From Malacoraja senta (taxonomy: Eukaryota), in the NCBI GenBank assembly GCA_038087875.1, contig JAXLNO010002777.1:124001-188000 (forward strand): DNA of 64,000 nt. Direction: 5' to 3'. Under the pieces are notes generated by a model. That model had not been told where the DNA came from and ran no database searches. It saw only the letters and a program-made list of their open reading frames with translations. Position 1 is the first letter of the stretch; the number at the start of each line of letters is the position of its first letter. Position numbers and translations under genes: made by a program. Below are positions 885-64,000 of the stretch, piece after piece.

Positions 885-886
885 CT

Positions 887-1500
887 GGGGGGGGGGGGGG
901 AGGGAGAGGATACAGGCTCAGACAGGGTGTGGGGGGGGGGGAGAGGATACAGCTCAGACAGGGTGTGGGGGGGGCAGATACAGGCTCAGACAGGGTGTAA
1001 GGGGGGGGGATGGGGCAGATAGAGGATACAGGCTCAGACAGGGTGTGGGGGGGGGAGGGAGAGGATACAGGCTCAGACAGGGTGTGGGGGGATGGGGCAG
1101 ATAGAGGCACAGGCTCAGACAGGGGTGTGGGGGGGATGGGGCAGATAGAGGATACAGGCTCAGACAGGGTTGGGGGGGGGGGCAGATAGAGGATACAGGC
1201 TCAGACAGGGTGTGGGGGGGGGCAGATAGAGGATACAGGCTCAGACAGGGTGTGGGGGGGAGGGAGAGGATACAGGCTCAGACAGGGTATGGGGGGGCAG
1301 ATAGAGGATTCAGGCTCAGATAGGGTGTGGGGGGGGATGGGGCAGATAGAGGATACAGGCTCAGACAGGGTGTGGGGGGGCAGATAGAGGATACAGGCTC
1401 AGACAGGGTGTGGGGGGGGAGATGGGGCAGATAGAGGATACAGGCTCATACAGGGTGTGGGGGGGGCAGATAGAGGCACAGGCTCAGACAGGGTGTGGGG
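887..1500 (+). repeat. G-rich minisatellite (~38-bp unit gatacaggctcagacagggtgtg(g)n)
   Basis: About 15 copies abutting the RCN3 exon acceptor. Confidence 0.9.
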
Positions 1501-1813
1501 AGAAATGGGATGCTGGCCCAGAGGGGGGGGGGTGGTGAGGCTCTGACCGGGAAACTCAACCAGGACTTTATTCCATGGAGCGCAGGAGGATGAGGGCTGA
1601 TCTTACCAAGGTGTACAAGATCATGGGGGGATTGACAGGGTGAATGCACGGAGTCAGTTACCCGGGAGGGGGATCAAGAAACGGGGTCCATCGGTTTAAG
1701 GCCAGAAGAGAAAGATTTAATCTGAACCCGAGGGGCAACTTTTCCACCCACAGGGTGGTGGGTGACTGGAACGAGCTGCCACGGAGGTAGTTGAGGTTCA
1801 ATAACAACTTTTA

Positions 1814-2460
1814 GACAATAGACAATAGGTGCAGGAGGAGGCCATTCGGCCCTTCGAGCCCAGCACCATTCAATGTGATCATGGCTGATCATCCCAATCA
1901 GTACCCCGTTCCTGCCTTCTCCCCATATCCCCTGACTCCGCTATTTTAAAAGAGCCCTATCTAGCTCTCTCTTGAAAGCATCCAGAGAACCTGCCTCCAC
2001 CGCCCTCTGAGGCAGAGAATTCCACAGACTCACCACTCTCTGAGAAAAAGTATTTCCTCGTCTCTGTTCTAAATGGCTTACTCCTTAATTCTTAAACTGT
2101 GGCCCTGGTTCTGGACTCCCCCAACATCGGAGTCCTGCCTCTGGCGTGTCCCAACCCTTAACAATCTTATATGTTTCATGAGAAACCCTCTCATCCTTTC
2201 TAAACTCCAGAGTGTACAAGTCCCAGCCGCCCCATTCTCTCAGCATATGACAGTCCCGCCATCCCGGGAATTAACCTTGTAAACCTACGCTGCACTCCCT
2301 CAATAGCAAGAATGTCCTTCCTCAAATTAGGACGAAAACTACACACAATACTCCAGGTGTGGTCTCACTAGGGCTCTGTACAACTGCAGAAGGACCCCTT
2401 TGCTCCTATACTCAACACCTCTTGTTATAAAGGCCAACATGCCATTCGCTTTCTTCACTG
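1814..2460 (-). mobile_element. CR1-type LINE 3' fragment
   Basis: Reverse complement of the CR1 3' end seen at 33635-34232 (ggccgaatggcctcctcctgcacctattgtcta tail) plus RT C-terminal sequence. Confidence 0.75.
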
Positions 2461-4736
2461 GAGAGGGACTTTGCTTAGAGGGGGCATCTAGATCAGCATG
2501 GGCAGTTGGACCAAAGGGCCCGTTTCTGTGCCATCTGCTTCTAAAATTAATTTAAATCACCCCAGTGGCCGCATCCCTCGTGGGGAGAGGACACATCCCA
2601 ATGTGCGAGGGATCGCCGTGCAAAGGAATATTTTCATGGCAGAGATAGACAGAGTCTTGATTAGTACGAGTGTCAGAGGTAATGGGGAGAAGGCAGGAGA
2701 ATGGGGTTAGGAGGGAGAGATAGATCAGCCATGATTGAATGGCAGAGTGGAATCGAGGGCCGAATGGCCTAATTTTACTCCTATCACTTGTGACGGAAGG
2801 AATGCAACTTAGTGAAAAATTATTACAGCAGCAATAAAAGAGATTGCAGCGTTCATCGTGAAAGATTAAAGCTCGGCTGGAAGTCGGAGAGATGAGGAAG
2901 TGTAAATAACTGGGCAGCTTCCAGCATGAGGAAGGGCAGGCATTACAAAATGGCTTTTAAAAAAGTGAACAAAAGTACTGCAGACGCTGGTTTAACAAAA
3001 AAAGGAAAAAGTGCCAGAGTGACTGGATCAGGCATAGGCAATAGGTGCAGGAGTAGGCCATTCGGCCTTCGAGCCAGCACCGTCATTCAATGTGATCATG
3101 GCTGGAGAACATGGATAGGCAAATGAAGAAGGGCGCCGACCCAAAACGTCACCTCTCCGTGTTTCCACAGATGCTGCCTGACCCGCTGAGTTACTCCAGC
3201 ACTTTGTATTAAAAAAAAAAAAAAAAAAATGAACACCGATTTAAAAAATCATATCCCAATACAAAGTGAATGAACCAGCTGCATTTGCGGATGCATGCCA
3301 CAAGGGGCAGTGTTGTTGCATGGAGCATAAGGAGCGAGGCTGGTTCTGGAGATAGCGAGTGTTTTGACCAGGATCTCAACCCCCCTCCCTTCCGTGAGCC
3401 GGGCCACAGACTGCCCCCCTGCAGCCACTCCAGCGCACCCAAGGCATCTTTTTTGTTTCACACAGAGGGTGGCGGGGGCCTGGAACACTGCAGGCAGAGG
3501 AGATGAGTTTAACAGCATTGTGTACGGCACGGACATTGTGGGCTGAAGGGGCCTGTTCCTGTGCTGCGCTGTTGTACAAGTGTTTTTTGGCATATGCACT
3601 GGGCAAGGTCAGGAACAATGAGATTGTTATTTACAGTAATGGAGTCGTAAGGCTTTGGCTCATTGAGTCTTCACCAACCATGAAGCGTCCATTGTGACGA
3701 ATCCCATTCCATTTCCCCCTCGTTCTCATTAACTCCTCCCGAGTTTTACCACTCACCTGTGCACCTGCCACAACCTACAGTGGCCAGTTTAGATTAGAGA
3801 TACAGCACGGAAACAGGCCCTTTGGCCCATCGAGGCCACGCAGACCAGCAATCACCCATTCACACTCGTTCCATGTTATCCACTTTCTCATCCCTACGTC
3901 CCTACACACTAGGAGCACCCGGAGGAAACCCACTCGGTCACAGGGAGAACTTGCACACTCCACACAGACAGCACCCGAGGTTGGGATCGACCTGTGTCTC
4001 TGGCGCTGTGAGGCTGCAAACTTGTAGCACGTTAGTTTTAGATTAGAGACACAGCATGAAAGCAGTCCCTTCGGCCCATCGAGCCCATTCCAACCATCGA
4101 TCAGCCGTTCACACCAGTTTCAATGTTAGCTCACTTTCTCATCCACTCCCTACACACTAAGGGGCAATTAACCTGCAAACCCTAAACGTGATAATAACAA
4201 AACTAAATGAGTTGGGCGTTCCATAAACTAGACCATGTTATTGCAAAACACAGGGTACACAGAGCAACCCAACATTAAGTTAACTCCCCAACAAGAGCAG
4301 TAGAGACCGTGGAGGTTTGGTGCTGAGCTGGGGCTGGGTTAGGATTGGGCAACGTTCAAGAGCCCGATGGTTGTTGGGAAGAAGCTGTTCTTGAACCTGG
4401 AGGTCAAGGTTCTCAAACTCCTGCAATAAGAGTGATAGGAGCAGAATTAGGCCATTCGGCCCATCGAGTCTACTCCGCCATTCAATCATGGCTGATCTAT
4501 TTTTCCCTCTCAACCCCATTCCCCTGCCTTCTCCCCGTAACCTTTGACACCCGTACAAATCAGCAACCTGTCGATCTCCAATTTGAAAATACCCAGTGAC
4601 TTGGCCTTCTTGCCAACAGTAGCAGTGAGAGGCGAGTGTGGCCAGGGTGTAGTGGGTCTTTGATGATATTGGCTGTGATTTGGAGGCAGTGCCCGGGCGG
4701 GGGGGGTGGGGAGGCGTGTCTGCCGTGTCTCCATAC

Positions 4737-4930
4737 CCTCGTGGAACCCATACGTGGCGTTCCTGTACTCCTCCCACGATATTTGGCCGTCCCGGTTGGC
4801 GTCGTACTCGTTCCAATGCTTCTTGACATTGTCGTCGACGTACCGGTTCTGTGCCCGCTTGATCCACGCGGTCAGCTCGTCCGCAGTCACCAGGCCGTCC
4901 TGGTCATGGTCAATGCGGTCCACGATTTTC
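4737..4930 (-). CDS. RCN3: Reticulocalbin-3-like, second coding exon (EF-hands 1-2)
   Basis: (G)KIVDRIDHDQDGLVTADELTAWIKRAQNRYVDDNVKKHWNEYDANRDGQISWEEYRNATYGFHE. AG at 4932-4931, GT at 4736-4735. 194 bp, phases 2/1. Confidence 0.9.
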
Positions 4931-5057
4931 CTGGAGGGGGGGGGGCGTGAGAGAACGAACAAACAAGACGGGCAGAAGGTGAGCGGAGGGAGTAAAGGAC
5001 ACGAGAGGATCAGGTCCACAGCCTCGCAACTCCAGAGACCTGGTTGAAGAGTAGAAA

Positions 5058-5870
5058 CAAGGAACTGCAGGCACACATAAAGTGCTGGAGTAACTCAGCG
5101 GGTCAGGCAGCATCTCTGGAGAGAAGGAATGGGTGACCTTGCGGGTCAAAACTCTCCTTCAGACTTTTTGCAGTCTGAACAAGGGTCTCGACCCAAAACG
5201 TCACCCATTCCTTCTCTCCAGAGATGCTGCCTGATTCGCTGAGTTACTCCAGCATTGGTGTCTATCTTCAGTTTAAACCAGCATCTGCAGTTCCTTGCTA
5301 CACAAAGTGTTGGAGTAACTCAGCGGGTCAAGCAATATCCTGGGAGAACAATATCCTGGAGAAACTTCTTGAGGCTCAAGAAGTAATCTATCCATGTTCT
5401 CCAGAGATGCTGCCTGACCCGCTGAGTTACTCCAGCACTCTGTGAAACGTCACCTATCCATGTTCTCCACAGATGCTGCCTGACCCGCTGAGTTACTCCA
5501 GCACTCTGGGAAACGTCACCTATCCATGTTCCGGCATCTATGGAGCGAAGGAAATAGGCAACGTTTCGGCCCGAAACCCTTCCGGGTTTCGGCCCGAAAC
5601 GTTGCCTATTTCCTTCAGGGTTTCGGCCGGAAAGGTTGCCCATTTCCTTTGCTCCACAGATGCTGCCTGACCCACTGAGTTACTCCAGCACTCTGTGAAA
5701 CATCACCTATCCATGTTCTCCACAGATGCTGCCTGACCCGCTGAGTTACTCCAGCACTCTGTGAAACATCACCTATCCATGTTCTCCACAGATGCTGCCT
5801 GACCCGCTGAGTTACTCCAGCACTCTGTGTCTTGTTTTGTAAACCAGCATCTGCAGTTCATCGTATCTAT
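5058..5870. mobile_element. Cluster of Penelope-derived termini: inverted pair plus ~65-bp tandem array
   Basis: 5058-5164 is the reverse complement of 5174-5295; 5385-5830 repeats cacctatccatgttctccacagatgctgcctgacccgctgagttactccagcactctgtgaaac. The Penelope assignment is inferred from the hammerhead-like core. Confidence 0.7.
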
Positions 5871-6974
5871 ATTAAACACTCTTGAAAAGCTCCCACCCCC
5901 AGTTCCCTAACAGCAGGATTTTACAAACTGCCTCTGGGTAATCAAGGGTGTGCACAGTCATCATTGGAAGCGGCTTAATGTTTTGGGGAAATATGTAACA
6001 GATTACTGGTCGGGGCTTCTCTGTTGGATCGCTGGGTGGGTGGAAGTGACTCAGTTCACTGCCACGTGTGAGGCTGCTATTGACAAGTCGCTCCGGTGTG
6101 GGGGTGGGGGGGAAGGGAACCCTCTCACTGCCACCTCAGCTCAGGAAGCAGCCGGCCATGTCAGGGAACTGTGAGGGGGGGGGGGGGGGGGCGGGACGGG
6201 AAACAGAGGCTGGAGTCTTCAATCCCAGGCACAAAGCAAAATAGCACAACTTCAGAAAGATTCCAAACTCCCAGCTTGTCGCAGAAAACACAAACCAGGA
6301 TCCCCGCGGTCAGAGATTGCATCAGGAATCCAGCTCGCAGTTGGAACGTCTAGTGGCCTGGGAAGTCTCAAAACTTTTAAGTTAAATTAAAATTATTATT
6401 AAGTTGAAGGCACAATGTTTAAAGGATTGATAAGTGCCAACATTTTAAGTCAAATTATTATTAAATTGAAGCTGCAATGTTTAGTGGTGTGGAAATGCCA
6501 ACGCTACAGGATTGTTCACTGAAACATCGCAAATGGGCAGAGGTTTATCAGGAGCTCCATCGCCTAACGGTTAAATAAAACGTCCTTCAATAAAACAGAC
6601 AGATGTTATCAACAACTATTAAGGTCGAGAGAACAGGGACAACTTGGCAGCTAGCTGGTGTAATGCTGGCTGGTGTCAGTGTAGCGAATGGGGTGGGGGG
6701 GGGGTCATTGTGAAGGGGATGAGGGGCAATGAAGGGGTACACAAGGAGAGTGTTGTAGGGGAGTCAAAATAGGGGGTGCACCAGGGCTGTCCTTCATCCC
6801 ATCACTTTTGAGGTCTTGTTTTCACTCCTTACCCTTCCTTATCTCTGTGTCCCCTTTTCCCTAACTCTGTCTGAAGAAGGGTCTCGACCCAAAACGTCAC
6901 CCATTCCTTCTCTCCAGTAATGCTGCCTGACCCGCTGAGTTACTCCAGCTATTTGTGTCTATCTTCTGTCACGT

Positions 6975-7137
6975 TGGGGGCAGTTTAGGGTGTGCACTGG
7001 ACCACCAGGGTGGGGGACAGTTCAGGGGGTGCACTGGGCCACCAGGGTGGGGGACAGTTTAGGGTGTGCACTGGGCCACCAGGGTGGGGGGGCAGTTTAG
7101 GGTGTGCACTGGACCACCAGGGTGGGGGACAGTTTAG
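6975..7137 (+). repeat. Minisatellite, ~37-bp unit x4
   Basis: cagtttagggtgtgcactggaccaccagggtggggg repeated. Confidence 0.85.
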
Positions 7138-7200
7138 GTGAGTGTAGCTGCTGTTCAAGGCTGAGATCAGGGGGAGCATTAGCATTGACATAGTGCCTAC

Positions 7201-7427
7201 CCCAGCCTCTCTTTGCTCTCCTCCGGAGTGAGTTGGTCGAAGGTCTGTGCGCCATCTCTCCCCATGAAGGCATCATGATCGAACTGGAAGCCGTTCTGGT
7301 CGTTTGGATCCCGCTCATCCAGGTCCTTGGAATGGTGCACGCGCTCCTTCTTCTCCGAGGTTGGTTTGCAGAATGCCACGGAGGCACATAGGGCCAGCAA
7401 CCCCAACAGGCTCCGCCGCCTCATCAT
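7201..7427 (-). CDS. RCN3: Reticulocalbin-3-like, first coding exon (signal peptide plus CREC N-terminus)
   Basis: [32 protein letters not shown]...[10 protein letters not shown]...[15 protein letters not shown]. Acceptor cttcctgcag lies 3 nt before the ATG; donor gtaggc at 7200. CREC family is certain. The RCN3 call over RCN1/CALU rests on [21 protein letters not shown] and linkage to a paired-less Pax6 paralog. Confidence 0.85.
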
Positions 7428-10328: not shown

Positions 10329-13320
10329 CTTCGACGTTTTGGGTTTTATGACCTTTAGCCAGTTCTTTTGCTTGGTTAATGTGGTTCAATGGTTCACCAC
10401 CCAGCTTCTGCACCAAAGACTTCAGGAAACATCAGTCCAAAACTCTTAACAACATATTAGAACAATCACTTTATTTCCATCTCTCTTCTATTTTCCCCTC
10501 TAGCTTTAAATTGTTAAGTGTCCATCGCTTTGCAAAAGATGCATAAGAGTTTGGTTTAATGATACAACATTGAAACAGGCCCTTTGGCCCATTGAGTCCA
10601 AGCCGACCATTGATCATCCATTCACACTAGTTCTACGTTATCCTGTTGAATCTCATCCATTCCCTACACATTAGGGGCAATTTAATTTATAGAGGCCAAC
10701 TAATCTGGGATGTGGGAGGAAACACAACGAGAACTTGCAGATTCCTCACAGACCACCCGAGGTCAGGATAAAACCTGGGTCTCTTGCTATGAGCCAGCAA
10801 CTCCACCAGCTGTGCCACCCTATAGAGATTCACTGAAATTGTGGGAATGGGGGACTTGAGGTACATTGGTAGACTGGAAAAATTGGGGTTGTGCTCCTTG
10901 GAAAGAGGAGGAAGAAGGAATTGCAGATGCTGGTGCACAAAAGTAGGCGCAAAGTGCTGGACTAACTCAGCGGTCTGAAGAAAGGGTCCCGACCCCAAAA
11001 CCTCACCAATCACATGTTCTCCAGAAATGCTGCCTGACCCGCTGAGTTAATCCAGCTCTACGTTTTACTTAGAATTGAGGAGGTTGTCAGGGATCAGATA
11101 GTGGTATTTAAAATGTAGAGGATGTAAACAGAGAAATTGACTCATTGACAGTGGGACCAGTAACAGAATGAAGGTGATTGACGGAATAAGCCAAAGTAAA
11201 AGATTTTCTTGCAGAGTGAATTCAGTAAAACTGATTATCTGACACCCTCAGAATTTTGGTGGAGCTAGATTAGCAGATCGCTGTACTATTGGATTTTCTT
11301 CCTATTCATACCCAAACACACATAATAATCATTTTTTTTACAAATTACACAATAATGTAATAAATTGTGATGAGCAAGAAATACACTAGTGCTCAAGACC
11401 TTGGCTTCAGTTGCAGATGTACCTATGTTCCTCACCTTTCGTGCTCTGGATCCTGATCCAGTTTTGGCTGCAGACAAATGTGTAGGAAGGAACCGCAGAT
11501 ACTGGTTTACCCTGAAGATAGACACAAAATGCTGGAGTAACTCAGCGGGATTGGCAGCATCTCTGGAGAGAAGGAATGGGAATTTGGGCTGCATTACCAG
11601 GAGACAGATCCACTGTATCTTGGTACACATGGCAATAATAACCCAATACCAATACAGATCTAATTTTGACCAGTGGCCTATATGTCACAAAGCTTTATGA
11701 TCACAAAGACATGGTGTATCAGAACATTGTTCTTGTGCTAAATGACTACAAAGAATAAGGACTTATTGAGCCATAGATTTATTTTGGAAGAAGTGAGCTG
11801 CCCAGTAATTGGAATAAAAATGTTTAAGCTTTATTCGAGTGTGAGCAAAATTACAGCTATGCCTATAAACTGTAGATCCAAGTCTGGTTTAAGCTTTGAT
11901 GAATTTATTCCTTGGAAGAACCAAGCTATTCAACAAACATTTTGACAAGAACACCTTTGTTGGGAAAGAACAAAGAAGGATAACTGTAGGATGCAGTTAA
12001 ATTGTGGTTTTATAATGGCCTTTATTGCAATCGTGTCTTTTATGCCTTTTGCCAGAACTGTCTGTCACCCAAACTTTCCATAAGTCAGAAATGCAGACGA
12101 TTGGGATCACAAAAGTTGCGCTGGTTGGTTAATTACCTCAGTTAATTTTGGGCCTCAGTTAGAATTAGCTAACTAGCATAGTAGATCTGAATTATGGATT
12201 CAAAACATGCTGAATCACAGAATGTGAGACTGGGGCGTTTCAACATATTTTGTGTATTCTTGACAGGAGTATTTCAAATTGAGAGGTACATATTTGCTTT
12301 CCTTTTCAGAGAAAGCTGAAAGTATTTTGAAAAGGCACCTTGGAGAGAACAAGGGCAATTGAGCAGTCTTTATGAAATCATCAGAAAAACAGAAGCAAGA
12401 AGACTCCATGAAGGTTAGCAGCAAACCCAAGTAAGATTATGGCCAGGGACTTTATTTCAGGTCAACTTTTAGAAACTGGTTACAGTACAGGGAATCTGCT
12501 TTGTTGAATAGTAATAGTTAAGCTCTGCATTTTCAAAGAAATCTTTTGCATAGCTGTACTTTTGGGGGAAGATTTATTAAAATTAGATTTTTAAGAGTCA
12601 ACCCCATTGGTCTATAGTGCTTGTCCCACTGTTTTCTAAAATAAGATAAAATTGTGATAATAGGTTATAATGACAGGCATTTTAATGTGACTACTGAGCT
12701 CAATTACCACATGGCACAATTATCTGGTAAAAATATACTCTAGTTCATGAGGACTGAAAATGTGTGTACTGAAATAGTCATGGGCTTAAGGGAAAGAAAG
12801 AGACTATCTGTGGTAAAGAATGTAAATTATGGTCATAATTCCCAGCTTCTTACAAAGTACTGGATTGTGTCTGAAAAAACAAATTAGTTTGATCTTTTGT
12901 GGATAATATAAGTGTGGATATTAGTTTAGTAGATTATTCCTATAGTAGGACTCTTCTATTCAGCTGTTTGTATGCCATATCACAAGAGTGGAAAGGAACT
13001 TTCTGTCAGATGCATGTTCGTGCTGCAAACGCTGAAACGATTTTAAAAATGGCGTTAAATGTTATCATTATTTTAACTTTTGCAAACAGTTTAAAACTAT
13101 CATGTTAGTCAGATTTTGTGCTTTGAATTGTCTTTCAAATGGTTTTCTAAAGCTGAATGTTAAGAGTGACCACCGGTGTGACGGACAGCTTTAGATTATG
13201 CTTCTGCCTAACCAATAAAGCCTTAAGCAAAAATCAAAGGAAAGAGATAAAGAAAGTAGTCTGAAGCATGCATTTTTTTACATGTAAAATAAGGTAATCT
13301 GTTTGTTTTGCAAATAATAG

Positions 13321-13649: not shown

Positions 13650-14501
13650 TCAGCTGTTGTCGGCCTCATTAAAGGGGGCAATGAGGAGGAGTATAGAGAC
13701 ATAATAAGTAACTTTGTGGAGTGGAGTGCACACAATAACCTCCATCTTAACACCACAAAAACCAAGGAGATAGTTGTGGACTTCAGGAGGGGGAGGAGGA
13801 GGACTCAAGCAACACCAATCACCATTAAGGGCACTGAGGTGGAGGTGGTCGCTAACCACAGGTACCTTGGTGTGCAGCTTGACAGTGAGCTGGACTGGAA
13901 GTGTCATGGAGGCGGTGTACAGGAAGGGACAAAGCCGACTGTATTTTTTAAGGAGGCTGAGGTCATTTAACATCTGCCAACCCCTACTGTGCAGTGTCTA
14001 CCATTCAGTGGTGGCCAGTGCTCTGTTTTTTGCTGTGGCCTGTTGGGGAGATGGCGCCCGCATAGCGGACAAAAACAGACTGTACAAGCTGATCAGGAAG
14101 GCCGGCTCAGTGGTCGGGGCTGAGCAACGAACGGTCCAGCAGGTGGCAGAGGCCAGAACTCTGAACAAACTGGGTTCTATAATGACCAACCCCACTCACC
14201 CACTCCATGCCCTGAAGGTGATCAAGAGCAGCATCTTCAGTCAGAGACTGATTGCACCAATGTGCAAAACTGAGAGACATAGGAAGTCCTGTTTACCAGC
14301 TGCTATAAGGTTATATAATGCGCATAAATAACTGCACTTTTTTTTTCATTAATTGTATTTTAACTTGTATTTTAACTTGTATTTTAACTTGTTAAGTATG
14401 GAAGCTATTTGAGGAAATGTGTGGTGTTATGTCTGTCTTGAAGCTGTCGTGGCACTGTAATTTCCTGTAAAGGATTATTAAAGGTATATCTATCTATCTA
14501 T
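13650..14501 (+). mobile_element. 5'-truncated Rex1/Babar-type LINE (RT C-terminus + 3' UTR), frameshifted
   Basis: SAVVGLI...NNLHLNTTKTKEIVVDFRR...YLGVQLDSELDW, then a frameshift into MEAVYRKGQSRLYFLRRLRSFNI...PAAIRLYN; 3' end attaaag followed by (tatc)n tail. Confidence 0.85.
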
Positions 14502-15500: not shown

Positions 15501-17085
15501 CAGTGGCTTGCAAAAGTTTTCATACCCCTTGAACTTTTCCACATTTTGTCACGTTACAACCACAAACGTAAATGTATTTTATTGGGATTTTATGTGATAG
15601 ACCAACACAAAGTGGTGCATAATTGTGAAGTGGAAGGAAAATGATACATGGTTTTCAAATTTTTTTACAAATAAAAAACTGAAAAGTGTCGCGTGCAAAA
15701 GTATTCAGCCCCCCTGAGTCAATACTTTGTAGAACCACCTTTCGCTGCAATTACAGCTGCAAGTCTTTTGGGGTATGTCTCTACCAGCTTTGCACATCTA
15801 GAGACTGAAATTTTTGCCCATTCTTCTTTGCAAAATAGCTCAAGCTCAGTCAGATTGGATGGAGAGCGTCTGTGAACAGCACTTTTCAAGTCTTGCCAGA
15901 GATTCTCAATTGGATTTAGGTCTGGACTTTGACTGGGCCATTCTCACATGAATATGCTTTGATCTAAACCATTCCATTGTAGCTCTGGCTGTATGTTTAG
16001 GGTCGTTGTCCTGCTGGAAAGTGAACCTCCGCCCCAGTCTCAAGTCTTTTGCAGACTCTAACAGGTTTTCATCCAAGATTGCCCTGTATTTGGCTCCATC
16101 CATCTTCCCATCAAGTCTGACCAGCTTCCCTGTCCCTGCTGAAGAAAAGCATCCCCACAGCATGATGCTGCCACCACCATGTTTCACAGTGGGGATGGTG
16201 TGTTCAGGGTGATGTGCAGTGTTAGGTTTCCGCCACACATAGCATTTTGCATTTCGGCTAAAAACTTCAATTTTGGTCTCATCTGACCAGAGCACCTTCC
16301 TCCACATGTTTGCTGTGTCCCCCACATGGCTTGTGGCAAACAGCAAACGGGACTTCTTATGGCTTTTTTTCAACAATGGCTTTCTTCTTGCCACTCTTCC
16401 ATAAAGGCCCGATTTGTGGAGTGCACGACTAATAGTGGTCCTGTGGACAGATTCTCCCACCTGAGCTGTGGATCTCTGCAGCTCCTCCAGAGTTACCATG
16501 GGCCTCTTGGCTGCTTCTCTGATCAATGCTCTCCTTGCCCGGCCTGTCAGTTTAGGTGGACGGCCATGTCTTGGTAGGTTTGCAGTTGTGCCATACTCTT
16601 TCCATTTTCGGATGATGGATTGAACAGTGCTCCGTGAGATGTTCAAAGCTTGGGATATTTGTTTATAACCTAACCCTGCTTTAAACTTCTCCACAACTTT
16701 ATCCCTGACCTGTCTGGTGTGTTCCTTGGGCTTCATGATGCTGTTTGTTCACTAATGTTCTCTAACAAACCTCTGAGGCCTTCACAGAACAGCTGTATTT
16801 ATACTGAGATTAGATTACACACAAGTGGACTCTATTTACTAATTAGGTGACTTCTGAAGGCAATTGGTTGCACTAGATTTTATTTAGGGGTATCAGAGTA
16901 AACGGAGCTGAATACTTTTGCACGCGACACTTTTCAGTTTTTTATTTGTAAAAAAATTTGAAAACCATGTATCATTTTCCTTCCACTTCACAATTATGCG
17001 CCACTTTGTGTTGGTCTATCACATAAAATCCCAATAAAATACATTTACGTTTGTGGTTGTAATGTGACAAAATGTGGAAAAGTTC
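15501..17085 (-). mobile_element. Tc1/mariner DD34E transposon, Passport-like IR/DR type; right TIR truncated
   Basis: Left end TA|CAGTGGCTTGCAAAAG. ~210-bp TIRs (15501-~15709 vs ~16907-17085) are near-identical, with inner and outer direct repeats. The last ~30 bp of the right TIR are missing. Confidence 0.95.
15719..16736 (-). pseudogene. Tc1 transposase with a single 2-bp frameshift near 15945
   Basis: 276-aa ORF (HTH, GRPPK, WSDETK, QDNDPKH) continues in another frame as [20 protein letters not shown]...KGGSTKY* (stop 15721-15719). Restoring 2 nt gives 339 aa with D-34-E spacing. Confidence 0.92.
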
Positions 17086-45690: not shown

Positions 45691-48689
45691 CATGATGTTA
45701 CTTGGAAATATGTAGAAGCTGGAATATCAACTGCCTTTATCAAGTGCAAGATATTACCCAGTTGAACATCCAGTATAACTAGTTTTTACCTGAAAGATTT
45801 ACTGTTTCTCTTCCCATTGACCTAATAAGTATTTGGTGACACAAGGAACTGCAGAAGTTGGAATCTTGAACACAACACAAAGTGCTGGAGCAACTCAGCG
45901 AATCAGGCAACATCTGTGGATGCAATAGACATGAAACGTTTCAGAAGGGTCCCGACCCAAACCGTTGTCTGAACATTTCCTCCACAGGTGTTGCCTGAGC
46001 CGTTGTGTCCCTCCTGCACTCTGTGTCTTGCTGCTGGGTATTAACTGCTTTAGTCTTTATTGTGGTCATAATCGTATTGCAATTAACAGGAACTTGGCAA
46101 ATTGGCGGCAGGGTTCCTATAATTTCCTCAGTGACTGGATCTCAAAAGTCCTACCTTGGCTGAAAAATCTTTGGCAGATCCTGAAAGATGAGCTCTTGAA
46201 AGATGCTTCAGAAATTGAGAGATGCAAGTATTCTATGAAAAGCAAGTGAGGTTTTATTGTTTAATTAGCTTTGAAATACAATAATGTGTAGGTCCTGAAA
46301 AAAGTTCCAACCCTCTACTGTTTCAGTATACATTGTAGATTGCACAACAATTTTCATTTGGAGGCATTGGAGACAATTTACCTTTTGGGAAACCAAAATA
46401 AAGTTCTTTCACTAAATACAATAAATTTGCAGCTGCAAAGCATGAAATCCAACTGGAATCGTTGTCATCGCTATAAAGATTGTGTGGTCCTTTGTCACAT
46501 TGTGCTTGAGTTGATTAAAATAATCTGTGCCTTCTGGACTCAGCCTGCAGTTACGTTGTTTTAATTTTTGATCTTTCTTGGCTGCACACAGCCGAAAACC
46601 CTTCAGCTGGCATGCATGGACGCGTGTCGCTGCCTGTGGCGTAAAGCAGGCATGGAGATGTGTGACAGAGAGGGAGAGATGAAGAGAAAATGGGGAGATT
46701 GTCAGAAAGAATCTAGTGTCTGTTGTCTGAAATGAAGCTGTATGTGTCAACCGTATATAAATTATACAGCTAGTCGTCTGAAAATGTACCTGGCCTACTA
46801 AAGGGCAATGGCCTTCATTATTTAATCTGTTTTCTCTTTCTACTTTATTTTCTCTTTCGCTTCCTTCCTTGATCTTCCACTCCTTGTTTTTCTGTTCCTT
46901 TCTTTCCAAGCTCCACGTTCTTTCTTCATTTTTCTTCCCGAGTAACACATGTTCTGCACTGCCATTTAAGAGTGATGGTTAGGAGATGAGTGCGTGCGAG
47001 TTTGTTCTTGAAACAAAGGACATTTTGAGAAGATTTAATTGAAGTACATTTCGTTTTATGATTCCCGCAAGACAGTATAGATGGGAAAGATATACTTCCC
47101 TCAGAAAATAGGTCAACATTTAGGATAGTAGATTGAAGGTAGTTGGTAAAAGGATTTAAGATAGAGTTAGATAGAGCTCTAGGGGCTAGTGGAATCAAGG
47201 GATATGGGGAGAAGGCAGGCACGGGTTATTGATTGGGGACGATCAGCCATGATCACAATGAATGGCGGTGCTGGCTCGAAGGGCCGAATGGCCTCCTCCT
47301 GCACGTATTTTCTATGTTTCTATGTTTCTATGATAGTTTAGTTTAGTGATACAGCGCAGAACAGGCCTTTCGGCCCTCCGCACCAACCTGTGATCCCCAT
47401 ACATTAACACTATTCTACACACACACTAGGAACTATTTTACATTCATACCAAGCCAATTAACCTACAAACCTGGACATCTTTGGAGTGTGGGAGGAGAAA
47501 CCCATGCAGGTCACGGGGAGAACGTACAAACTCCGTATAGACAGCACCTGTGGTCTGGATCGAACCCGGGTCTCTGGCGCTGTTAGGCAGTCGCTCTACT
47601 GCTCCACCACCGTGCTGCCAGAATTGGAGGGACTTGAAGAAAACAAATTTTCATCCAAAGGGTGAGGGTGAAGAGCTCTTGCCTGAATGGATAGTGGAGG
47701 CAGACGTTCACACCGTGTTTCAGGTGTGCCTGGACATTCCCAGACCTACCTGGGTTTGTATAGAGAGCTGGCAGTTGAGGTTAGCTTCAATAGTTACTTC
47801 TTGGCTAGCATGGACACTGTGGGGTGAATGAATTGTGTCTGTACCATGAATATCTGTATCATGGAGACATAGAGTCCTACAGCACGGCAACAGACCCTTT
47901 GGCCCAACTCGTCCATTGCCAACCAAGATGCCCCATCTAAGCCAATCCCATTTAACCCACATCCCTCTAAACCTTTCCTATCCATGTACCTGTCCAAGTG
48001 TCTTTTAAATGTTGTTATAGTGTCAGCCTCAACTACCTTCTCTGGCAGCTCGTTCCATATACCTACCACTCTGAGTGAAAATGTTGACCCTCGGGTTCCT
48101 ATCTTTCCCCTCTCACCGTAAACCTATATCCTCTGATTCTTGATTAACCTACCCTTGGTAGAGTCCTTTACCAAGATGCCCCAATCTAAGGTGTCCCATT
48201 TCCTTATGTTTGTGCATTCACCCTGTCTATTCCCCTCCTAATAGAACACAAAGTACTGGAGCAACTCGGCAGGCCAGGCAGCGTTTCTGGAGAACATGGA
48301 TAGGTGATGTTTAGGGTCGGGTGGTGAATCTGTGGAATTATTTTTCATAGACGGCTGTGGAAGCCAAGTCAATGGATATATTTAAGGCGGAGACAGATAG
48401 ATTCTTGATTAGTACGGGTGTGGGGAGAAGGCAGGAGAATAGGTTAGGAGGGAGAGATAGATCAGCCATGATTGAATGGCGGAGTAGACTTCACAAGTTA
48501 TAAGAGTAGAATTAGGCCATTCGGCCCATCGAGTCCACCACCATTCAATCATGGCTGATTTCTGCCTCCTGTCCCATTTTCCTGCCTTCTCTCCATAACC
48601 CTTGATGGTCGAATTGGCCTAATTAGTGATAGATTAGTCTCCCATCATTAATGAGACCCCTTTTTCCAGAGATGCTGCCTGACCTGCTG

Positions 48690-50313
48690 AGGTGGTGGGC
48701 TGAAGGATCTGCTCCAGTGCTGGCTCTCTTGTGACTTCTCCTCCTCCCAGCCTTTCTTTCCTCTTCTCTTCTTCCCCCTTCCTTGAGATTGCCTTGAGAG
48801 AGGATCTGGCTGCTGTGTTTTGCCCCCGCCTCTCCCTCCACCGTCTGACGAACAGAAATGGACAGCTTGACCCCTCCGATCATGCCGGTGCTTTGTGGCG
48901 AACAGCCAACTTTAAAGTAAAGAACACAAGGCGTTGACACGAAGTGACAAGGCTGCCACGAACGTTTCCAGTGATCTTTCCAGGCAGCCTAGCGTACATG
49001 ATACCTCTAGACTCCTTCAGCCCATTCTGGGGAATTAAGTTCAAAGTTGACGTTAATGCTACCAACAAATGTCACAAAGATTCATCTCCTCTTGTTTGCA
49101 TTTTCAAGAACTTATTTATTCACACGGGTTCCACATTTAGAATCAGTTACACGCGGACCATCGGCGCAGGAGTTAGCCATCCAGCTCTAGGCTGAGTATG
49201 CCTATATTTTTTATTTTATGGAATTTTTTTCTTTAAGGCTTTAGTTTTTTTTTTGTTTCTTTAAATAGGGAGGGGAAAGGGTGGTGCGAGTATGCATGAT
49301 GTTTACCTAGAACTCGAAGAAGCATCGATGTTGGAATCAAAACCTAAGTCTTTCTTATTGCTTCATGTTTTGAACATTTTGACTCAAGTTGTGAAAGATT
49401 AGAATCAGTGGCAAGAGGATTTTTAAGACATCTTTGAACATTTTCAGGGAATTTGTAGTGAAATGCTGTGGAGTTGTTAGAATGGGTTTCCTTTTTTAAA
49501 AAAAACAAGCAATGAAGGGTTTGGAGTTGAATTTTGTACCGAGGATATTTCTTTGAGTCTTATTTCGCCTTTTAAATGGTCTCTCTGACTGGTAAATATT
49601 TTACTGTTGACAAAATGACTCAATTCCAACGAGTTTTATCATTGCTGGTGTTTACAAGTATTGAGGACAGCTAGATGTTTTATTTTTGAAGATCAGGGCG
49701 ATTCTTGTGATTTCTTTCTGATAAGGAGCGTGAAGTGATCGCGGTCACTGTTTCGGAGATATCTTTAGATCAGGGGCCGTGTTTCAGCAGCGATGAAATT
49801 TTGTTCCAATTTAACTCCGAAAAGTTAATTATTCGTTGTGAAGTGACCAACTTGCACTCTGCGAATTCAGGCAACGAATGTCGTAAATGCTGCTCGCAAT
49901 TGTACGAATACTCACCCGCTTGTTTAATTATGGAGTTGGAGTTTTGATATTTATCGTTTCGTTTATTCAGGGAGCGAATAAGATTTGCAATTTTAACCAT
50001 GGATTAAAAATTATCTTGAGGAAAGTCGAAAGGGGCGTTGCTTTTCTTTTATGGGTGGAACGATTTAAATTGTATTGAAGATGAATGTATACCAATCGCT
50101 CGGAAGAGACCGAAATGGTTTTTGTCGTCATCTGCAAATAGTCTTCTCAATCCTTGCCTTTTATTTGCTGTTTGCCTTATGAAACATCTCCAAAGTTCCA
50201 TCTTTAAAATTACATTTCAGAATATTTCATATATATACTGTTTATTAAGGGCTGTTATTTCTATTTACATAGAAACCCCTAACATAGAGAAATGTATGAT
50301 GATTATTTAATAC
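48690..50313 (+). promoter_or_regulatory. Candidate promoter / exon-alpha-like region of Pax10
   Basis: About 1.6 kb free of recognisable TEs, with retained CpGs, a polypyrimidine tract (48730-48790) and the NRE-like core; exon boundaries not resolvable. Confidence 0.45.
48925..49005 (+). promoter_or_regulatory. Likely homologue of the Pax6 alpha/neuroretina enhancer (NRE) core
   Basis: CAAGGCGTTGACACGAAGTGACAAGGCTGCCAC...TGATCTTTCCAGGCAGCCTAGCGTACATGAT resembles the mammalian Pax6 alpha-enhancer core as I recall it (AAGTGACAAGGCTGCCAC...TGATCTTTTCAATTAGCCTTCCATGCATGAT). It lies in a TE-free, CpG-retaining block upstream of a Pax6-like exon. Confidence 0.7.
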
Positions 50314-50675
50314 NNNNNNNNNNNNNNNNNNNNNNNNNNNNNNNNNNNNNNNNNNNNNNNNNNNNNNNNNNNNNNNNNNNNNNNNNNNNNNNNNNNNNNN
50401 NNNNNNNNNNNNNNNNNNNNNNNNNNNNNNNNNNNNNNNNNNNNNNNNNNNNNNNNNNNNNNNNNNTANNNNNNNNNNNNNNNNNNNNNNNNNNNNNNNN
50501 NNNNNNNNNNNNNNNNNNNNNNNNNNNNNNNNNNNNNNNNNNNNNNNNNNNNNNNNNNNNNNNNNNNNNNNNNNNNNNNNNNNNNNNNNNNNNNNNNNNN
50601 NNNNNNNNNNNNNNNNNNNNNNNNNNNNNNNNNNNNNNNNNNNNNNNNNNNNNNNNNNNNNNNNNNNNNNNNNNN
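50314..50675. other. Assembly gap (N run)
   Basis: N bases, with an isolated 'ta' at 50467-50468. Confidence 0.99.
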
Positions 50676-52737: not shown

Positions 52738-53085
52738 AGCTAGATGCGGGAAATATGTTCCCAATGTTGGGCGAGTCCAGAACCAGGGGCCACAGTCTTA
52801 GAATAAAGGGGAGGTCATTTAAGACTGAGGTGAGAAAAAACATTTTCGCCCAGAGAGTTGTGAATTTGTGGAATTCCCTGCCACAGAGGGCAGTGGAGGC
52901 CAAGTCACTGGATGGGTTTAAGAGAGAGTTAGATAGAGCTCTAGGGGCTAGTGGAGTCAAGGAATATGGAGAGAAGGCAGGCACGGGTTATTGATAGGGG
53001 ACGATCAGCCATGATCACAATGAATGGCGGTGCTGGCTCGAAGGGCCGAATGGCCTCCTCCTGCACCTATTTTCTATGTTTCTAT
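52738..53085 (+). mobile_element. CR1 LINE 3' fragment
   Basis: LDAGNMFPMLGESRTRGHSLRIKG...QRVVNLWNSLP plus ctatgttt tail. Similar stubs at 18961-19172(-), 47153-47332(+), 20530-20940(+) and 54495-54848(+). Confidence 0.85.
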
Positions 53086-58645: not shown

Positions 58646-61600
58646 TTGGGATATTTTTAAACCTTTATCTTTGCATAGTTTGACCTTTAAAAGAGGCTGA
58701 ACAGCCAGGATCATGTCTTATTCAAAAGGCCGAGGCATAAATGTTTTTCACTACTGTGGGAGGCAGGTTAGATTCTTGTTTACGTTTTGGAATAAAACTT
58801 GAATATAATATCCCAAGGCAGTGAAGACTGTGGAGAAAATGATACCAAGTTGAAGGTTATTGTCATATGCACGGGCCAGTGAGATATAAAATAACTGGTT
58901 TGCAGCAGCAACACAACAACAAACTACACATAAACTACACAATTAATTCTAAAAGAAAGAAGACTATGCAAAAAAGAAAACATTAATGCAAAAACATAAT
59001 TAGAACAATGAACGTCAATTGTAGTTTAGGGGAGGATTATAGTGACCTGCTGTTGAGGTAATATTAGGGTTACGTAGGAAAGACACAAAGTGTACGGGGT
59101 GATCGCTGGTTGGCGCGGACTCGATGGGCCGAAGGGCCTTTATTCACTCTATACTAAACTAACTTAGTGCGAAGATAGACACAAAAAGCTGGAGTGACTC
59201 ATCGGGTCAGGCAGCATCTCTGGCGAAAAATAATATGTGGCGTTTCGGGCCGAGACCCTTCTTCAGGCTGAGTCAGGGGAGAGGGAAACGAGAAATATAG
59301 ACGGTACATAGAACAAATGAATGAAAGACGAGCAAAAAGCAACGATGATCTAGAAAAGGTGGAGCCCACAATGGTCCATTGTTGGCTGTGGGCTAGGTGA
59401 TAACGAGTGATACTGACAGTGAAACTCATCCAGATGACAGTGAAACTAGTACAACAACTAGGGTGGAGAAGAGACGGGGAGAGTGCGGCTGTAAGGGATA
59501 CTTGGTTAGAGAACTCAAAGAAGGGACTCGATCTGAAACATCACCCATTCCTTCTCTCCAGAGATGCTGCCTGTCCCGCTGAGTTATTCCAGCATTTTGT
59601 GTCTATCTTCAATATTCACTCCACTGGGGTGTAAGATGCCGAAATGAAATATGAGGTGGTGTTCCTCCAATTTGTATTTGGCCCCACTCTGAGAGTGGAG
59701 GAGGGCCAGGACAGAAAGATCAGTGTGGGAGTGGGGAGGGGAGTTAAAGTGTTTAGCAACTGGGAGATCATGTAGGTCCAGGCGGACTGAGCGAATGTGT
59801 TCAGCGAAACGATGGCCCAGTCGCCGCTATGAAAGAGTCCACGCCTGGAACAGCGGATATATCGTGTTTGCAGCCGGAAAGCAGGTCACACGGAAATGTT
59901 TAGTATATTTCTGTTCGTGGGACTTTGTTCTGCAAAGTTGGCTGCAAATTTGTGCTCACACAGGTCCCATGAACAGCTTGTTTCCGCGCTGTATCTCTAA
60001 AACGTTTTAAAAAACTAAATGAATAACGAACTAAAAAAAAATACTTTTGGAAACTGAAACGAAAATAGGAAATATTGGATTCTCGAAGGACCATGGAATG
60101 ACAGATGGAATGAATGTTTCAGCTTTATGGCCTTTCACAGGGATACAGGCCCAGTGCTGGAAAGTGGGGCTAGGTGGGCAGCTTGATGTGTTTCATGATG
60201 GGCTGAATGGCTTTCTGTGCCTCAATGTTCTATGATGCTGGGATTGTACTGAATATGTGTGACCAAAGCCAACATCTGTGCACGCGTGCTCATGTGTGCG
60301 TTTGTGCCTGCACACACGTGTGTGCAAGCATGCGCATGCACGTGATTCTGTTTGTCTTACACAGCTGTGTGTGAAGAAGGGTCTCGACCCGAAAAGTCAC
60401 CCATTCTTTCTCTCCAGAGATGCTGCCAGTCCCGCTGAGTTACTCCAGCATTTTGTGTCTATCTTCGGTTTAAACCAGCATGGCAAAGCATTGTGTAGGA
60501 AAGAACTGCAGATGCTGGTTTAAATCGAAGATACACTCTAGACACAAAATGCTGGAGTAACTCAGCGGGACAGGCAGCATCTCTGGAGAGAAGTAATGGG
60601 TGACGTTTTGGGTTGAGACCCTTCTTCGACTTCTGCAGTTCCTTCCTGCACACAGCTGTGTGTGTCTGCCATTGTGTCTGTCTGTGTCTTTATGTATGTA
60701 TGTATGTATGTATGCGTGTGAATGCTGCTTGTACATGTGTATGTGTGTGAGGGAGACAGTGCGTCTCTGTTTGTGAGTGTATGAATCAGTCTGTTAGTGT
60801 ATGCCTGTGTGTTCAGAACTGGTCACAGTTCTTCACGTGGTGTTTGACTGAAACTGTGCAACTCACAGATAACTTGCTTAAGGTCACAAGTGATAGGAAC
60901 AGAATTAGGCCATTCGGCCCATCAAGTCTACTCCGCCATTCAATCATGGCTGATCTATCTCTCCCTCCTAACCCCATTCTCCTGCCTTCTCCCCATAACT
61001 CCCGACACCCGTACTAATCATGTTTCCTGTCATGGCTCCCACAGTCTTGTAGACATCAAGTGTTAAAACAAGCATCTTATGTAATATGATGGGAGGTTGT
61101 GAAAATCGAGAGAAAAAAGGAGAAGGGGAAAGTGATAGCTCTTTTTAAAAGAAGTATTTTCACTTGTTTATCAGGTTTTTAAAAAATAAAATTATAGGTT
61201 GAAATAATCATTAATAAAAGGGGGGGGGCTCAGTAGTACATTTGGTAAAGCCACTGCCTCACGGCACCCAGGCTCAATCCTTATCTTGAGTGCTGCCTGT
61301 GTGGAGTTTGTACGTTCTCCCTGTGACCACGTGAGTTCCCCCTTGGTGCTCCGGTTTCCTCCCACATCCCAAAGACGTGCGGGTTTGTAGATTGATCGGC
61401 CCTCTGTAAATTGCCCCCTAGTGTGTAGGGAGTGGATGAGAAAGTGGGATAACACAGAACTAGTGTGAATGGGTGATCGATGGTCTGTGCAAACTCGGTG
61501 GGCTGAAGGGCCTGTATCCATGGTGTATCTCTAAACTAAATTATACGAACTAATTGGAACTGTTCTCCTGTCTTTACCTTGCACGGTTCCAGCTTCTGCT

Positions 61601-62564
61601 CACTGATGTGACCAAGGAGAGGTGCCATAAATTGGCGGGAGGTCCCTCTCCTTCCCCTCCGTCGGCTGTCCACTGACGGTGAAATCATCGAGATTCCTCA
61701 ATCACCAGATCTCTGGGGTGCAACGATTCTTCTCTCTGATCTCATGACTGAGGTGAGTTCATCTCTCCCCTCCTCCGCCCCCCCCTCCCCCCCTCCCCTC
61801 CCCTTCCACCTACATTCCTTCCTCCAGCTTCACAATTTGCAACTCTTCAATCCTTTTGTCTCGCACCTTCTGTCTTTTCATCTCTGGCCTTTGTCCAACC
61901 ATCTGCCCATCTTTAGACTTTAGATATACAGAGTGGAATCAGGCCCTTTGACCCACCGAGTCCGCGCCGACCAGAAATCACCCCGTACGCTAACACTATC
62001 CTACACATACAGAAGCCAATTAACCTATAAAACCTGTATGTATTTGGAGTGTGGGAGGAAACCGGAACACCCAGAGAAAACCCACGTGGTCACGGGAAAA
62101 ACGTACAAACTCTGTACAGACAACACCTGTAGTCAGGATAGAACCCGGGTCTCTGGCACTGTGAGGCAGCAACTCTACCGCTGCACCACCGTGCCGGCCT
62201 CTAGCAAACCGCACCCCCCCCCCCCTCCTCTCCTGTATCAACCTATTTCCTGCCAGGCTTTGTCCTGTCCCTCCTCTCTTCCAGCTTTCTTTCTCCCAGT
62301 CTGAAGAAGACCCGAAACGCCACCTATCCATGCTCTCCAGAAATGCTGCCTAACCTGCTGTCACTCCAGCATTTTGTGTCATTTTTCGTGAACCAGCATC
62401 TGAACTTCCTTGTTTCTAAAATAACACCCCCCCCCCAACCCCCGCTTCAAACCCTTGATTATATCCCGACCCACAGCTCACTAATGCACCTGGAATTTTA
62501 AACAAATGCCCCTCAATCAAGGAGCACTCAGTAAGTCATTCAGCCTTGTTGCGCACATACCCCT

Positions 62565-62896
62565 NNNNNNNNNNNNNNNNNNNNNNNNNNNNNNNNNNNN
62601 NNNNNNNNNNNNNNNNNNNNNNNNNNNNNNNNNNNNNNNNNNNNNNNNNNNNNNNNNNNNNNNNNNNNNNNNNNNNNNNNNNNNNNNNNNNNNNNNNNNN
62701 NNNNNNNNNNNNNNNNNNNNNNNNNNNNNNNNNNNNNNNNNNNNNNNNNNNNNNNNNNNNNNNNNNNNNNNNNNNNNNNNNNNNNNNNNNNNNNNNNNNN
62801 NNNNNNNNNNNNNNNNNNNNNNNNNNNNNNNNNNNNNNNNNNNNNNNNNNNNNNNNNNNNNNNNNNNNNNNNNNNNNNNNNNNNNNNNNNNNNNNN
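62565..62896. other. Assembly gap (N run)
   Basis: N bases. Confidence 0.99.
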
Positions 62897-62933
62897 CACA
62901 ATGCATTGACTACGCTGACGGCAGAACTGAGGG

Positions 62934-63251
62934 CGGGCACGGTGGCTCAACGGTAGAGTCGCTGCCTTACAGCGCTTGCAGCGCCTGAGGCCCGGGTTCC
63001 ATCCCGACTACGGGGGCTGTCTGTACGGAGTCTGTATGTTCTCCCCGTGACCTGCGTGGGTTTTCTCCAAGATCTTCGGTTTCATCCCACACTCCAAAGA
63101 CGTGCAGGTTTGTAGGTTGATTGGTTTGGTATAAATGTAAAATTGTCCCCAGTGTGTGTTGGATAGTGTTAGTGTGCGGGGATCGCTGGTCGGCACGGAC
63201 CCGGTGGGCCGAAGGGCCTGTTACCGCGCTGTATCACTAAACTAAACTAAA
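62934..63251 (+). mobile_element. Full-length V-SINE
   Basis: Same architecture as 54904-55219. Confidence 0.85.
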
Positions 63252-63448
63252 AACAACAGTTGACCCTGTTGAAGTGGAGTGGACGATAGTTACATTCTCA
63301 CAATGAGCTGACAATGTCACACTGGAGAGAAGGCACCAGCTCCAAGCATATTCCGTCCATGGCTCAGATAGCCCTCTGTGCTGACCCTGAACTGAACCCT
63401 GTGTCCGTGCTTTATCTCTAATCTAAACTGAACTCCTTGCTGTGTTAG

Positions 63449-63614
63449 GTGCTGGCTGCAGGCGGATCCTTGCAGACCCTGGCCACCGAGGAGCATCCGA
63501 TGGGAGCAGACGGGATGTACGACAAACTGCGGATGTTGAACGTGCAGCCGGGAAGCTGGGGCGCCCGGTCGGGCTGGTACCAGGGAGGCTCCATGGCAGG
63601 GCAAGCCGCTGCAG
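63449..63614 (+). CDS. PAX10: Pax6-family exon homologous to Pax6 exon 7; probable first coding exon of paired-less Pax10 (Pax6.2), ATG at 63500
   Basis: ttag|[55 protein letters not shown]|gtaagg versus Pax6 [55 protein letters not shown]. Same 166-bp length and 0/1 phases. Pax6-family identity is strong; the Pax10 assignment comes from divergence, absence of paired exons and RCN3 linkage. Confidence 0.82.
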
Positions 63615-64000
63615 GTAAGGGTCTACACTGGTCCCGTTCAGAGATACGGCAGATTGGGGGGGAACAGGCCCTTCGGCCCACTGAGTCCGTGCTGGCCACC
63701 GATCGCCCATTCACACTTATACCACTTTTGCACACACTCCAGGGCCAATTAACCTACAAACCTGCACGTCTTTGGATGTGGGAGGAAACCGGAGCACCCG
63801 GAGGAAACGGGGGGAACGTGTAAACTCCACACAGGCAGCACTCAAGGTCAGGGTCGAACCCAGGTCTGTGGCACTGTGAGGCAGCAGCCTTACTGATTCT
63901 GGAGGAGGCATTGGGCTGGGCAAACTTGGACATGAATGATCCAATGTCCTCTGCTGCCTTTACTGGACTTTACCTTACAGTAAACGTTATTCCCCTTATC

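Follow-up and report, generated by a model that had tools for sequence, protein, structure and literature searches.

A skate Pax10 (Pax6.2) gene with a conserved, apparently translated relic of the paired-domain end behind a predicted upstream start exon

We analysed a 64-kb stretch of DNA from the skate Malacoraja senta (64,000 nt; referred to below as the window), which holds at its right end one exon of a gene that we identify as Pax10 (Pax6.2), together with an upstream mini-exon, part of a reticulocalbin gene and three conserved non-coding sequences. The window stops 386 nt past the Pax10 exon, such that the homeodomain exons fall outside it; in orthologous loci these are found downstream. 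The features referred to in the text are as follows.

7427-7200, 4929-4741 and 885-697, minus strand: first three coding exons of reticulocalbin-3 (Rcn3), from tblastn and EF-hand Pfam matches
48830-49147, no strand: conserved non-coding element, 81% identical over 319 nt to elephant shark (E = 1e-78)
46473-46603 and 46664-46796, no strand: two further conserved blocks, 77-79% identity (E = 6e-19 and 3e-23)
50314-50466 (153 nt), 50469-50675 (207 nt) and 62565-62896 (332 nt): runs of N, 692 nt in total
61551-61743, plus strand: conserved block, presumed 5'UTR and core promoter, 81% identical over 215 nt to Pristis and 68% to Heptranchias
61744-61752, plus strand: predicted coding part of the mini-exon, ATG ACT GAG (MTE), followed by the consensus donor GTGAGT
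61753-63448, plus strand: predicted intron 1, 1,696 nt, with SINE-like repeats and the N run at 62565-62896
63449-63614, plus strand: probable second coding exon, homologue of Pax6 exon 7, 166 nt, with ttAG on its 5' side and GTAAGG on its 3' side
63449-63499, plus strand: paired-domain-tail relic, 17 codons, from a fixed-register test, 6PAX, conservation and pN/pS
63500-63614, plus strand: remainder of the exon from the internal Met, 38 codons plus 1 nt, from tblastn, phmmer and an identity table

The exon at 63449-63614 reads in frame 1 as 55 codons plus one nucleotide, with the donor GT at 63615, and both its sequence and its translation confirm the 166-bp AG..GT exon that a first-pass annotation of this DNA had proposed. 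Since the TAG of the acceptor is itself a stop in this frame, the ORF is closed against the intron. Pax6 exon 7 has the same length (166 nt), phase and borders, and it consists of the same 55 codons plus one nucleotide, as shown by genomic ORF-type matches that read ..FQ/VSSINRV...GQPTQ/G, with the slashes at the exon borders. From codon 18 onward the exon had been described as close to Pax6, and both phmmer and tblastn agree with this: 14 consecutive residues, counted from the internal Met, are identical between the two. When the exon peptide was compared with 1.84 billion representative proteins using phmmer, 57 matches were returned, the best of which are Pax6 exon-7 fragments and full Pax6 proteins (E = 7e-13 and below, 64-67% identity). 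The alignments to these begin at query residue 7 or 8, within the 17 codons upstream of the Met. In a second group, query residue 18 is aligned exactly to protein residue 1; these proteins, whose first residue is the internal Met, are entries from squamates, turtles and the coelacanth, named 'Pax-6-like' or 'paired box 10' and having no PAX domain, and they include Anolis V5ZDW9. A PDB search with the exon peptide returned chance matches only, and a word-index protein search with the 124-aa ORF at 63449-63820 gave no match.

Both exon borders are supported by a 197-nt contig from a related species (run X14, its kind guessed to be RNA), which covers 63449-63614 only and carries 31 extra letters at the donor end that do not match the intron, as is expected of a spliced transcript. 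The contig comes from a relative, stops at 63449 and shows no upstream partner; the break exactly at 63449 is compatible with alternative upstream partners. In an alignment of the exon from five species, conservation falls abruptly at both splice sites.

Codons 18-55 are 87% identical to Pax10 of Pristis, 84% to that of Narcine and 84% to that of Mobula, and 74-79% identical to shark and elephant shark Pax10. Identity to Pax6, shark Pax6 included, is 66-71%, and the exon is nearer to Pax10 orthologues (74-87%) than to Pax6. The same codons carry the Pax10 signature NVQ / WG[GA]R / WYQ, where Pax6 has NGQ / WGTR / WYP, and at the DNA level the exon is 84% identical to its Pristis Pax10 counterpart. 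Judging from these identities, from Rcn3 synteny and from the 319-nt element upstream, we identify the gene, in agreement with the first-pass annotation, as the known paired-less Pax10/Pax6.2 rather than Pax6. Within the Pax4/6/10 class, Pax10 is known to be paired-less, and it encodes a retinal homeodomain transcription factor; its lack of a paired box, Rcn3 synteny, enhancer and retinal role have been published (PMC3554528, PMC4122933, PMC6925180).

Rcn3 lies upstream of Pax10 and head-to-head with it, and extends beyond the start of the window. Its exons are 93-95% identical to an Amblyraja radiata protein (tblastn), which marks the DNA as that of a skate (Rajiformes), and the closest named relatives of the protein encoded at 697-7427 are reticulocalbin-3 of skates, rays and sharks. 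Rcn3 and Pax10 are located on the same contigs in six species (Pristis, Rhincodon, Heterodontus, two Scyliorhinus species and Narcine), and for the elephant shark, too, Rcn3 has been published as lying upstream of Pax6.2 (PMC3554528). The element at 48830-49147 aligns to positions 1593-1906 of the Callorhinchus locus sequence (L003), 7.4 kb upstream of Pax6.2, and its position fits that of a homologue of the neuroretina (NRE/P-alpha) enhancer. The NRE is the sole conserved element upstream of Pax6.2 (Ravi 2013, PMC3554528), and for the homology of this element to the Pax6 intron-4 element we follow the same paper (PMC3554528). The two further conserved blocks, 46473-46603 and 46664-46796, match in collinear order the sequence that precedes the NRE in the elephant shark.

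Other sequences in the window are of less certain nature. An element of about 75 nt is present in two copies (47240-47312 and 53002-53074), each of the Pax10 loci of Callorhinchus and Heptranchias has one site that matches it (75-85% identity), and it may be an ancient repeat core. An ORF at 13774-14331 with a Pfam ALKBH8_N match (E = 2.4e-11) lies in an AT-rich, repeat-like region and is probably a retroelement fragment. No Rfam match was found in the whole 64-kb window.

We then consider the 17 codons that precede the internal Met. The crystallised Pax6 paired domain (6PAX, 133 residues) ends exactly with VSSINRVLRNLASEKQQ, residues 117-133, so that the relic covers only the last 17 of the 133 residues. 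The translated codons were scored against this Pax6 tail with BLOSUM62 in a fixed register, leaving no search freedom. The window sequence scores 17, with five of the 17 positions identical. Compared with 54,569 stop-free 17-mers drawn from the window, p is 8e-4; compared with shuffles, it is 3.5e-4. Its orthologues score 21 (Pristis), 24 (Mobula), 27 (Scyliorhinus, Cetorhinus and Heterodontus) and 31 (Callorhinchus, with 8/17 identities); scores of 27 and 31 are reached by none of the 54,569 random 17-mers, corresponding to p below 2e-5 for the elephant shark. In the alignment, Pax10 and Pax6 share V1, L8, L11, A12 and E14 without exception. S3 is invariant among the aligned proteins, yet is Ala in the window, and this S3A change and A7S are found in no other examined species; a Q is also present at an already variable site. 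The S and R of the ancestral paired-domain helix are also kept by most other species' relics.

These comparisons support descent of codons 1-17 from the end of the paired box. The first-pass annotation had read them in this way, from the retained length, frame and a few residues, and the fixed-register score (p = 8e-4) and the invariant V, L, L, A and E point in the same direction; it had also reported the loss of SSINR, in whose place stands LAAGG. An AlphaFold model of Pristis Pax10 residues 1-160 has a helix at residues 7-16, with pLDDT of only ~50-60, and was set aside as too weak.

The search for a start codon upstream of the exon used the pattern ATGACNGARGT, to which the window has two matches. 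The one at 55435 is unconserved, has no usable donor context after it and was rejected. The other, at 61744-61754, reads ctcATGACTGAG followed by GTGAGT, a perfect donor, and the resulting MTE exon joins 63449 in phase 0, in frame with the 17 codons. In Pristis, Heptranchias, Callorhinchus and Rhincodon the exon is likewise preceded, at a distance of 0.65-4.5 kb, by ATGAC[T/C]GAG followed by GTRA, and the only difference among the mini-exons is a synonymous ACT/ACC. In the conserved block upstream of the start exon there is a two-codon ATG TGA (61606-61611) that is kept in Pristis and Heptranchias; the aligned Callorhinchus sequence is GCGTCTAC, without an ATG.

Public proteins from Callorhinchus, Chiloscyllium, Heterodontus, two Scyliorhinus species, Cetorhinus, Rhincodon/Stegostoma, Heptranchias, Mobula and Pristis begin with an N-terminus of the form MTEVLSA.G.L.TLA.E.HP. 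The records include Heterodontus 'paired box 10' and AGD98731 (Callorhinchus 'paired box 6.2', 302 aa, 2013), which is the protein record accompanying Ravi et al. 2013 (PMC3554528); most of the MTE-starting proteins are automatic predictions, which favour the longest ORF. Several other public models have the internal Met as their first residue (Chiloscyllium X4, Hemiscyllium, Mustelus, Narcine, Hypanus, Hemitrygon, and Callorhinchus X1/X2). The context of the upstream ATG is weak, with C at -3 and A at +4, and the internal ATG has G at +4. In the sevengill Heptranchias perlo the internal Met (of MGADG) is replaced by CTG (Leu; positions 12007-12009 of locus sequence L002) and the MTE exon is intact, such that the annotated protein can start only upstream. 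In Stegostoma tigrinum, two proteins (P0197 and P0200) begin differently, with MVATSD- spliced to these 17 codons, so that in sharks the acceptor is used by at least two first exons.

From conservation and the models of other species, we infer that the skate transcript has a junction between 61752 and 63449 and that the upstream ATG is used in this species; alongside it there are probably isoforms initiated at the internal Met (63500), produced by leaky scanning or from alternative first exons. The exon had previously been taken to be the first coding exon, with translation starting at 63500. The conserved in-frame MTE exon at 61744-61752 makes it the second instead, and the proposed start does not agree with public proteins that begin MTE, AGD98731 included, or with the missing internal ATG of Heptranchias.

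To describe the substitution pattern we compared the two parts of the exon across five species, with pN and pS as summed values. In codons 1-17 the variable columns at codon positions 1, 2 and 3 number 4, 2 and 10 (pN 0.085, pS 0.35, pN/pS 0.25), and in codons 18-55 they number 12, 8 and 25 (pN 0.096, pS 0.59, pN/pS 0.16). The pairwise relic values for this skate are higher, 0.19-0.86, from few sites. Neither stops nor frameshifts are present in codons 1-17 in the five genomic sequences or in the public proteins. In contigs from three closely related species, compared over 63250-63800, all four listed differences are synonymous third-position changes, in codons 15, 20, 38 and 52. A pseudogene was rejected, because the frame is intact, pN/pS is low and the close relatives differ only synonymously.

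The relic thus appears to evolve under purifying selection, and to be conserved and apparently translated. The first-pass annotation had regarded the 51 nt upstream of the Met as an eroding ex-coding remnant, and had named a comparison of codons 1-17 with codons 18-55 across chondrichthyans as a way of checking this. The outcome (0.25 versus 0.16) is against erosion, as are the third-position bias of 4, 2 and 10 and conservation from the elephant shark to sharks and rays. Of that earlier account, the Pax10 identity, the origin of the relic and the lack of an upstream paired box hold, whereas its first coding exon and its eroding, untranslated remnant do not. We favour, with a probability of roughly 0.8, a reading in which the exon, homologous to exon 7 of Pax6, is the second coding exon of a gene that has lost its paired exons but retains a 17-codon relic behind the MTE exon, under purifying selection.

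An alternative is that translation begins at the ATG at 63500, with the exon being the first coding one and the 51 nt upstream an untranslated and eroding part of the 5'UTR. Some public isoforms do begin at the internal Met, the Kozak context of the upstream ATG is weak, and in tetrapods the Pax10 sequence before the Met is unlike the paired-domain tail (score -24), with the alligator stretch between acceptor and ATG being 70 nt long and its frame lost. However, across holocephalans, sharks and rays the 51 nt are conserved like the rest of the exon, their variation is third-position biased (4, 2, 10) with a pN/pS of 0.25, and stops and frameshifts are absent from the five genomic sequences and the public proteins. 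Together with the conserved in-frame start mini-exon and the missing internal ATG in Heptranchias, this makes an untranslated remnant unlikely in cartilaginous fishes.

It is also conceivable, but quite improbable, that conservation of the 51 nt reflects a role at the RNA or regulatory level, such as a splicing enhancer, a 5'UTR element or a uORF tuning the internal ATG, with no functional peptide being made. The pS is lower in codons 1-17 than in codons 18-55 (0.35 versus 0.59), which would fit an added constraint at the nucleotide level, and both the weak context of the upstream ATG and the low-confidence AlphaFold N-terminus (pLDDT ~50-60) are compatible with such a role. Nevertheless, the third-position bias and the amino-acid conservation are typical of coding sequence, and the upstream ORF runs without a break and in the same frame into the main one, such that its translation yields an extended protein and no separate peptide. 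The loss of the internal Met in Heptranchias further argues that the long form suffices.

The preferred reading also includes loss of the paired exons. A tblastn search of all 64 kb with the full Pax6 protein gave the exon at 63449-63614 as the only match (E = 4e-14), and no paired box was found by this search in the preceding 63 kb, in a window of which 692 nt are N; the absence first noted for the preceding 14 kb is therefore borne out and extended to 63 kb. A weak paired-like tblastn match at 16709-16587 falls in a Tc1 transposase helix-turn-helix and was set aside. The region has an intact 276-aa ORF (15906-16736, minus strand) with Tc1/Sleeping-Beauty-type transposase helix-turn-helix domains, which accounts for this match, the only weak paired-like one in the window.

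The orthologous loci gave the same picture. A paired-domain query against the N-free Pristis, Heptranchias and Callorhinchus loci, with 10 kb upstream, found nothing better than E = 0.37; for Callorhinchus the sequence searched takes in everything between the enhancer-like element and the exon. The gap-free Pristis intron 1 (1,711 nt) has no paired box, and in it a tblastn extension over Pax6 residues 84-119 contains stops and has weak similarity, and was judged to be an over-extension and not a relic of exon 6. The Pfam PAX domain (PF00292) has no match in the exon peptide or in full Pristis or Callorhinchus Pax10, even at E = 10, although it matches Mustelus Pax6 at 2.3e-22, and down to E = 10 the only Pfam match in the orthologous Pax10 proteins is the homeodomain.

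We consider it extremely improbable that the gene is canonical Pax6 or a full-length paralogue with paired-box exons in the N runs or farther upstream. The N runs fall downstream of the NRE homologue and ahead of the exon, in the interval expected for Pax6 exons 5 and 6, and their sizes (153, 207 and 332 nt) are physically able to hold these exons, exon 5 of Pax6 being about 131 nt and exon 6 being 216 nt (derived from 72 residues). But the exon groups with Pax10, apart from shark Pax6, and the neighbouring gene is Rcn3 instead of Rcn1; since Rcn3 begins at 7.4 kb, there is no space for paired-box exons farther upstream. SSINR, a recognition-helix motif whose loss would be unexpected if a paired domain were still made, is gone, with LAAGG in its place. 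The MTE exon separates gap 1 from the exon and is joined to the latter directly in the models of other species, and intron 1, inside which the 332-nt gap falls, is of near-equal length in the skate and in Pristis (1,696 versus 1,711 nt). The N-free orthologous loci have no paired box and the orthologous proteins no Pfam PAX domain. Paired-box exons 5 and 6, an intact VSSINRVLRNLASEKQQ and, on the upstream side, Rcn1/Elp4 synteny, all of which would mark a Pax6 gene, were not found at this locus.

The probable history is that Pax10 lost its paired-domain exons but kept the exon carrying the last 17 codons of that domain. In cartilaginous fishes, a small upstream exon would supply ATG ACT GAG and be spliced in phase 0 onto the relic exon, and the main predicted protein would then comprise MTE, the 17-residue relic and the 14 Pax6-identical residues onward. 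That the 20-residue N-terminal peptide might have a function of its own is pure conjecture. We propose tentatively, and with less than even confidence, that cartilaginous-fish Pax10 is not fully paired-less, and that a translated relic with its own function has been present since before the holocephalans diverged from sharks and rays, with the start exon holding it in frame. If this is true, the relic would act without paired-domain DNA binding, for example in protein interaction, in stability or by modulating homeodomain binding, and a relic of the last helix of the paired domain would have been kept in cartilaginous fishes, having decayed into 5'UTR in bony vertebrates.

Pax10/Pax6.2 itself has already been described, and the extended N-terminus is already present in public protein records. 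The published accounts describe the gene as being without paired-domain coding sequence and make no remark on a retained tail (PMC3554528, PMC4122933, PMC6925180). For the skate Pax10, the analysis shows its orthology and exon structure, a conserved start exon and a substitution pattern of coding type; beyond what was known, the window adds only an orthologue from a skate in which Rcn3, the enhancer-like element and the paired-less gene are arranged as published. The locus illustrates domain loss in which the paired exons are gone and the linker-shared exon borders are kept, with the leftover 17 codons apparently coding behind a new start exon in one vertebrate lineage and decayed in the other. 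This offers a natural comparison for asking whether the relic peptide has a function, and leaves the picture of the Pax family unchanged. Overall, the gene was already known and what is new is a modest evolutionary detail, one that corrects a reading of the 17 codons as an eroding fossil.

In comparison with known systems, canonical Pax6 (Pax6.1) has an invariant VSSINRVLRNLASEKQQ that closes a complete paired domain, whereas the skate gene has neither SSINR nor the upstream paired exons. A closer parallel is the Pax6 delta-PD form, which is produced from the P-alpha promoter in intron 4 and has the homeodomain and PST domain without the paired domain (PMC3554528). The same exon and the same internal Met are involved as in skate Pax10; however, the paired-less form of Pax6 is an isoform from the internal Met, whereas in skate Pax10 the gene itself is without paired exons, and in cartilaginous fishes the start exon appears to return the 17 preceding codons to the protein.

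The elephant shark Pax6.2/Pax10 gene (PMC3554528, PMC4122933) shares with the skate its exon borders, MTE mini-exon, 17-codon relic, Rcn3 neighbour and upstream element, and is likewise without a paired box. The two differ in that the skate relic has two unique changes and the Q at the variable site, and in that the skate introns and intergenic regions are much larger: the element is 12.6 kb from exon 1 in the skate and 7.4 kb in the elephant shark, and the distance from Rcn3 to exon 1 in the skate is 54 kb.

Bony-vertebrate Pax10 (coelacanth, lizards, turtles, crocodilians, frogs and teleosts) is orthologous and paired-less, with the same internal Met and exon end, and shares the signature in the form NIQ / WGGR / WYQ. 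It differs in having no recognisable paired-domain tail before the Met (extended tetrapod models score -24), and its annotated proteins mostly begin at the Met. In Alligator mississippiensis, a candidate shark-like acceptor (ccag/GTGC) precedes the Pax10 ATG, and the 70 nt between the two (positions 5931-6000 of locus sequence L005) are out of register and have no similarity to the paired-domain tail, such that this stretch looks like a decayed state of the same tail. The alligator stretch and the tetrapod score indicate that erosion did occur in bony vertebrates, and it is these, instead of the cartilaginous fishes, that the erosion proposed in the first-pass annotation fits.
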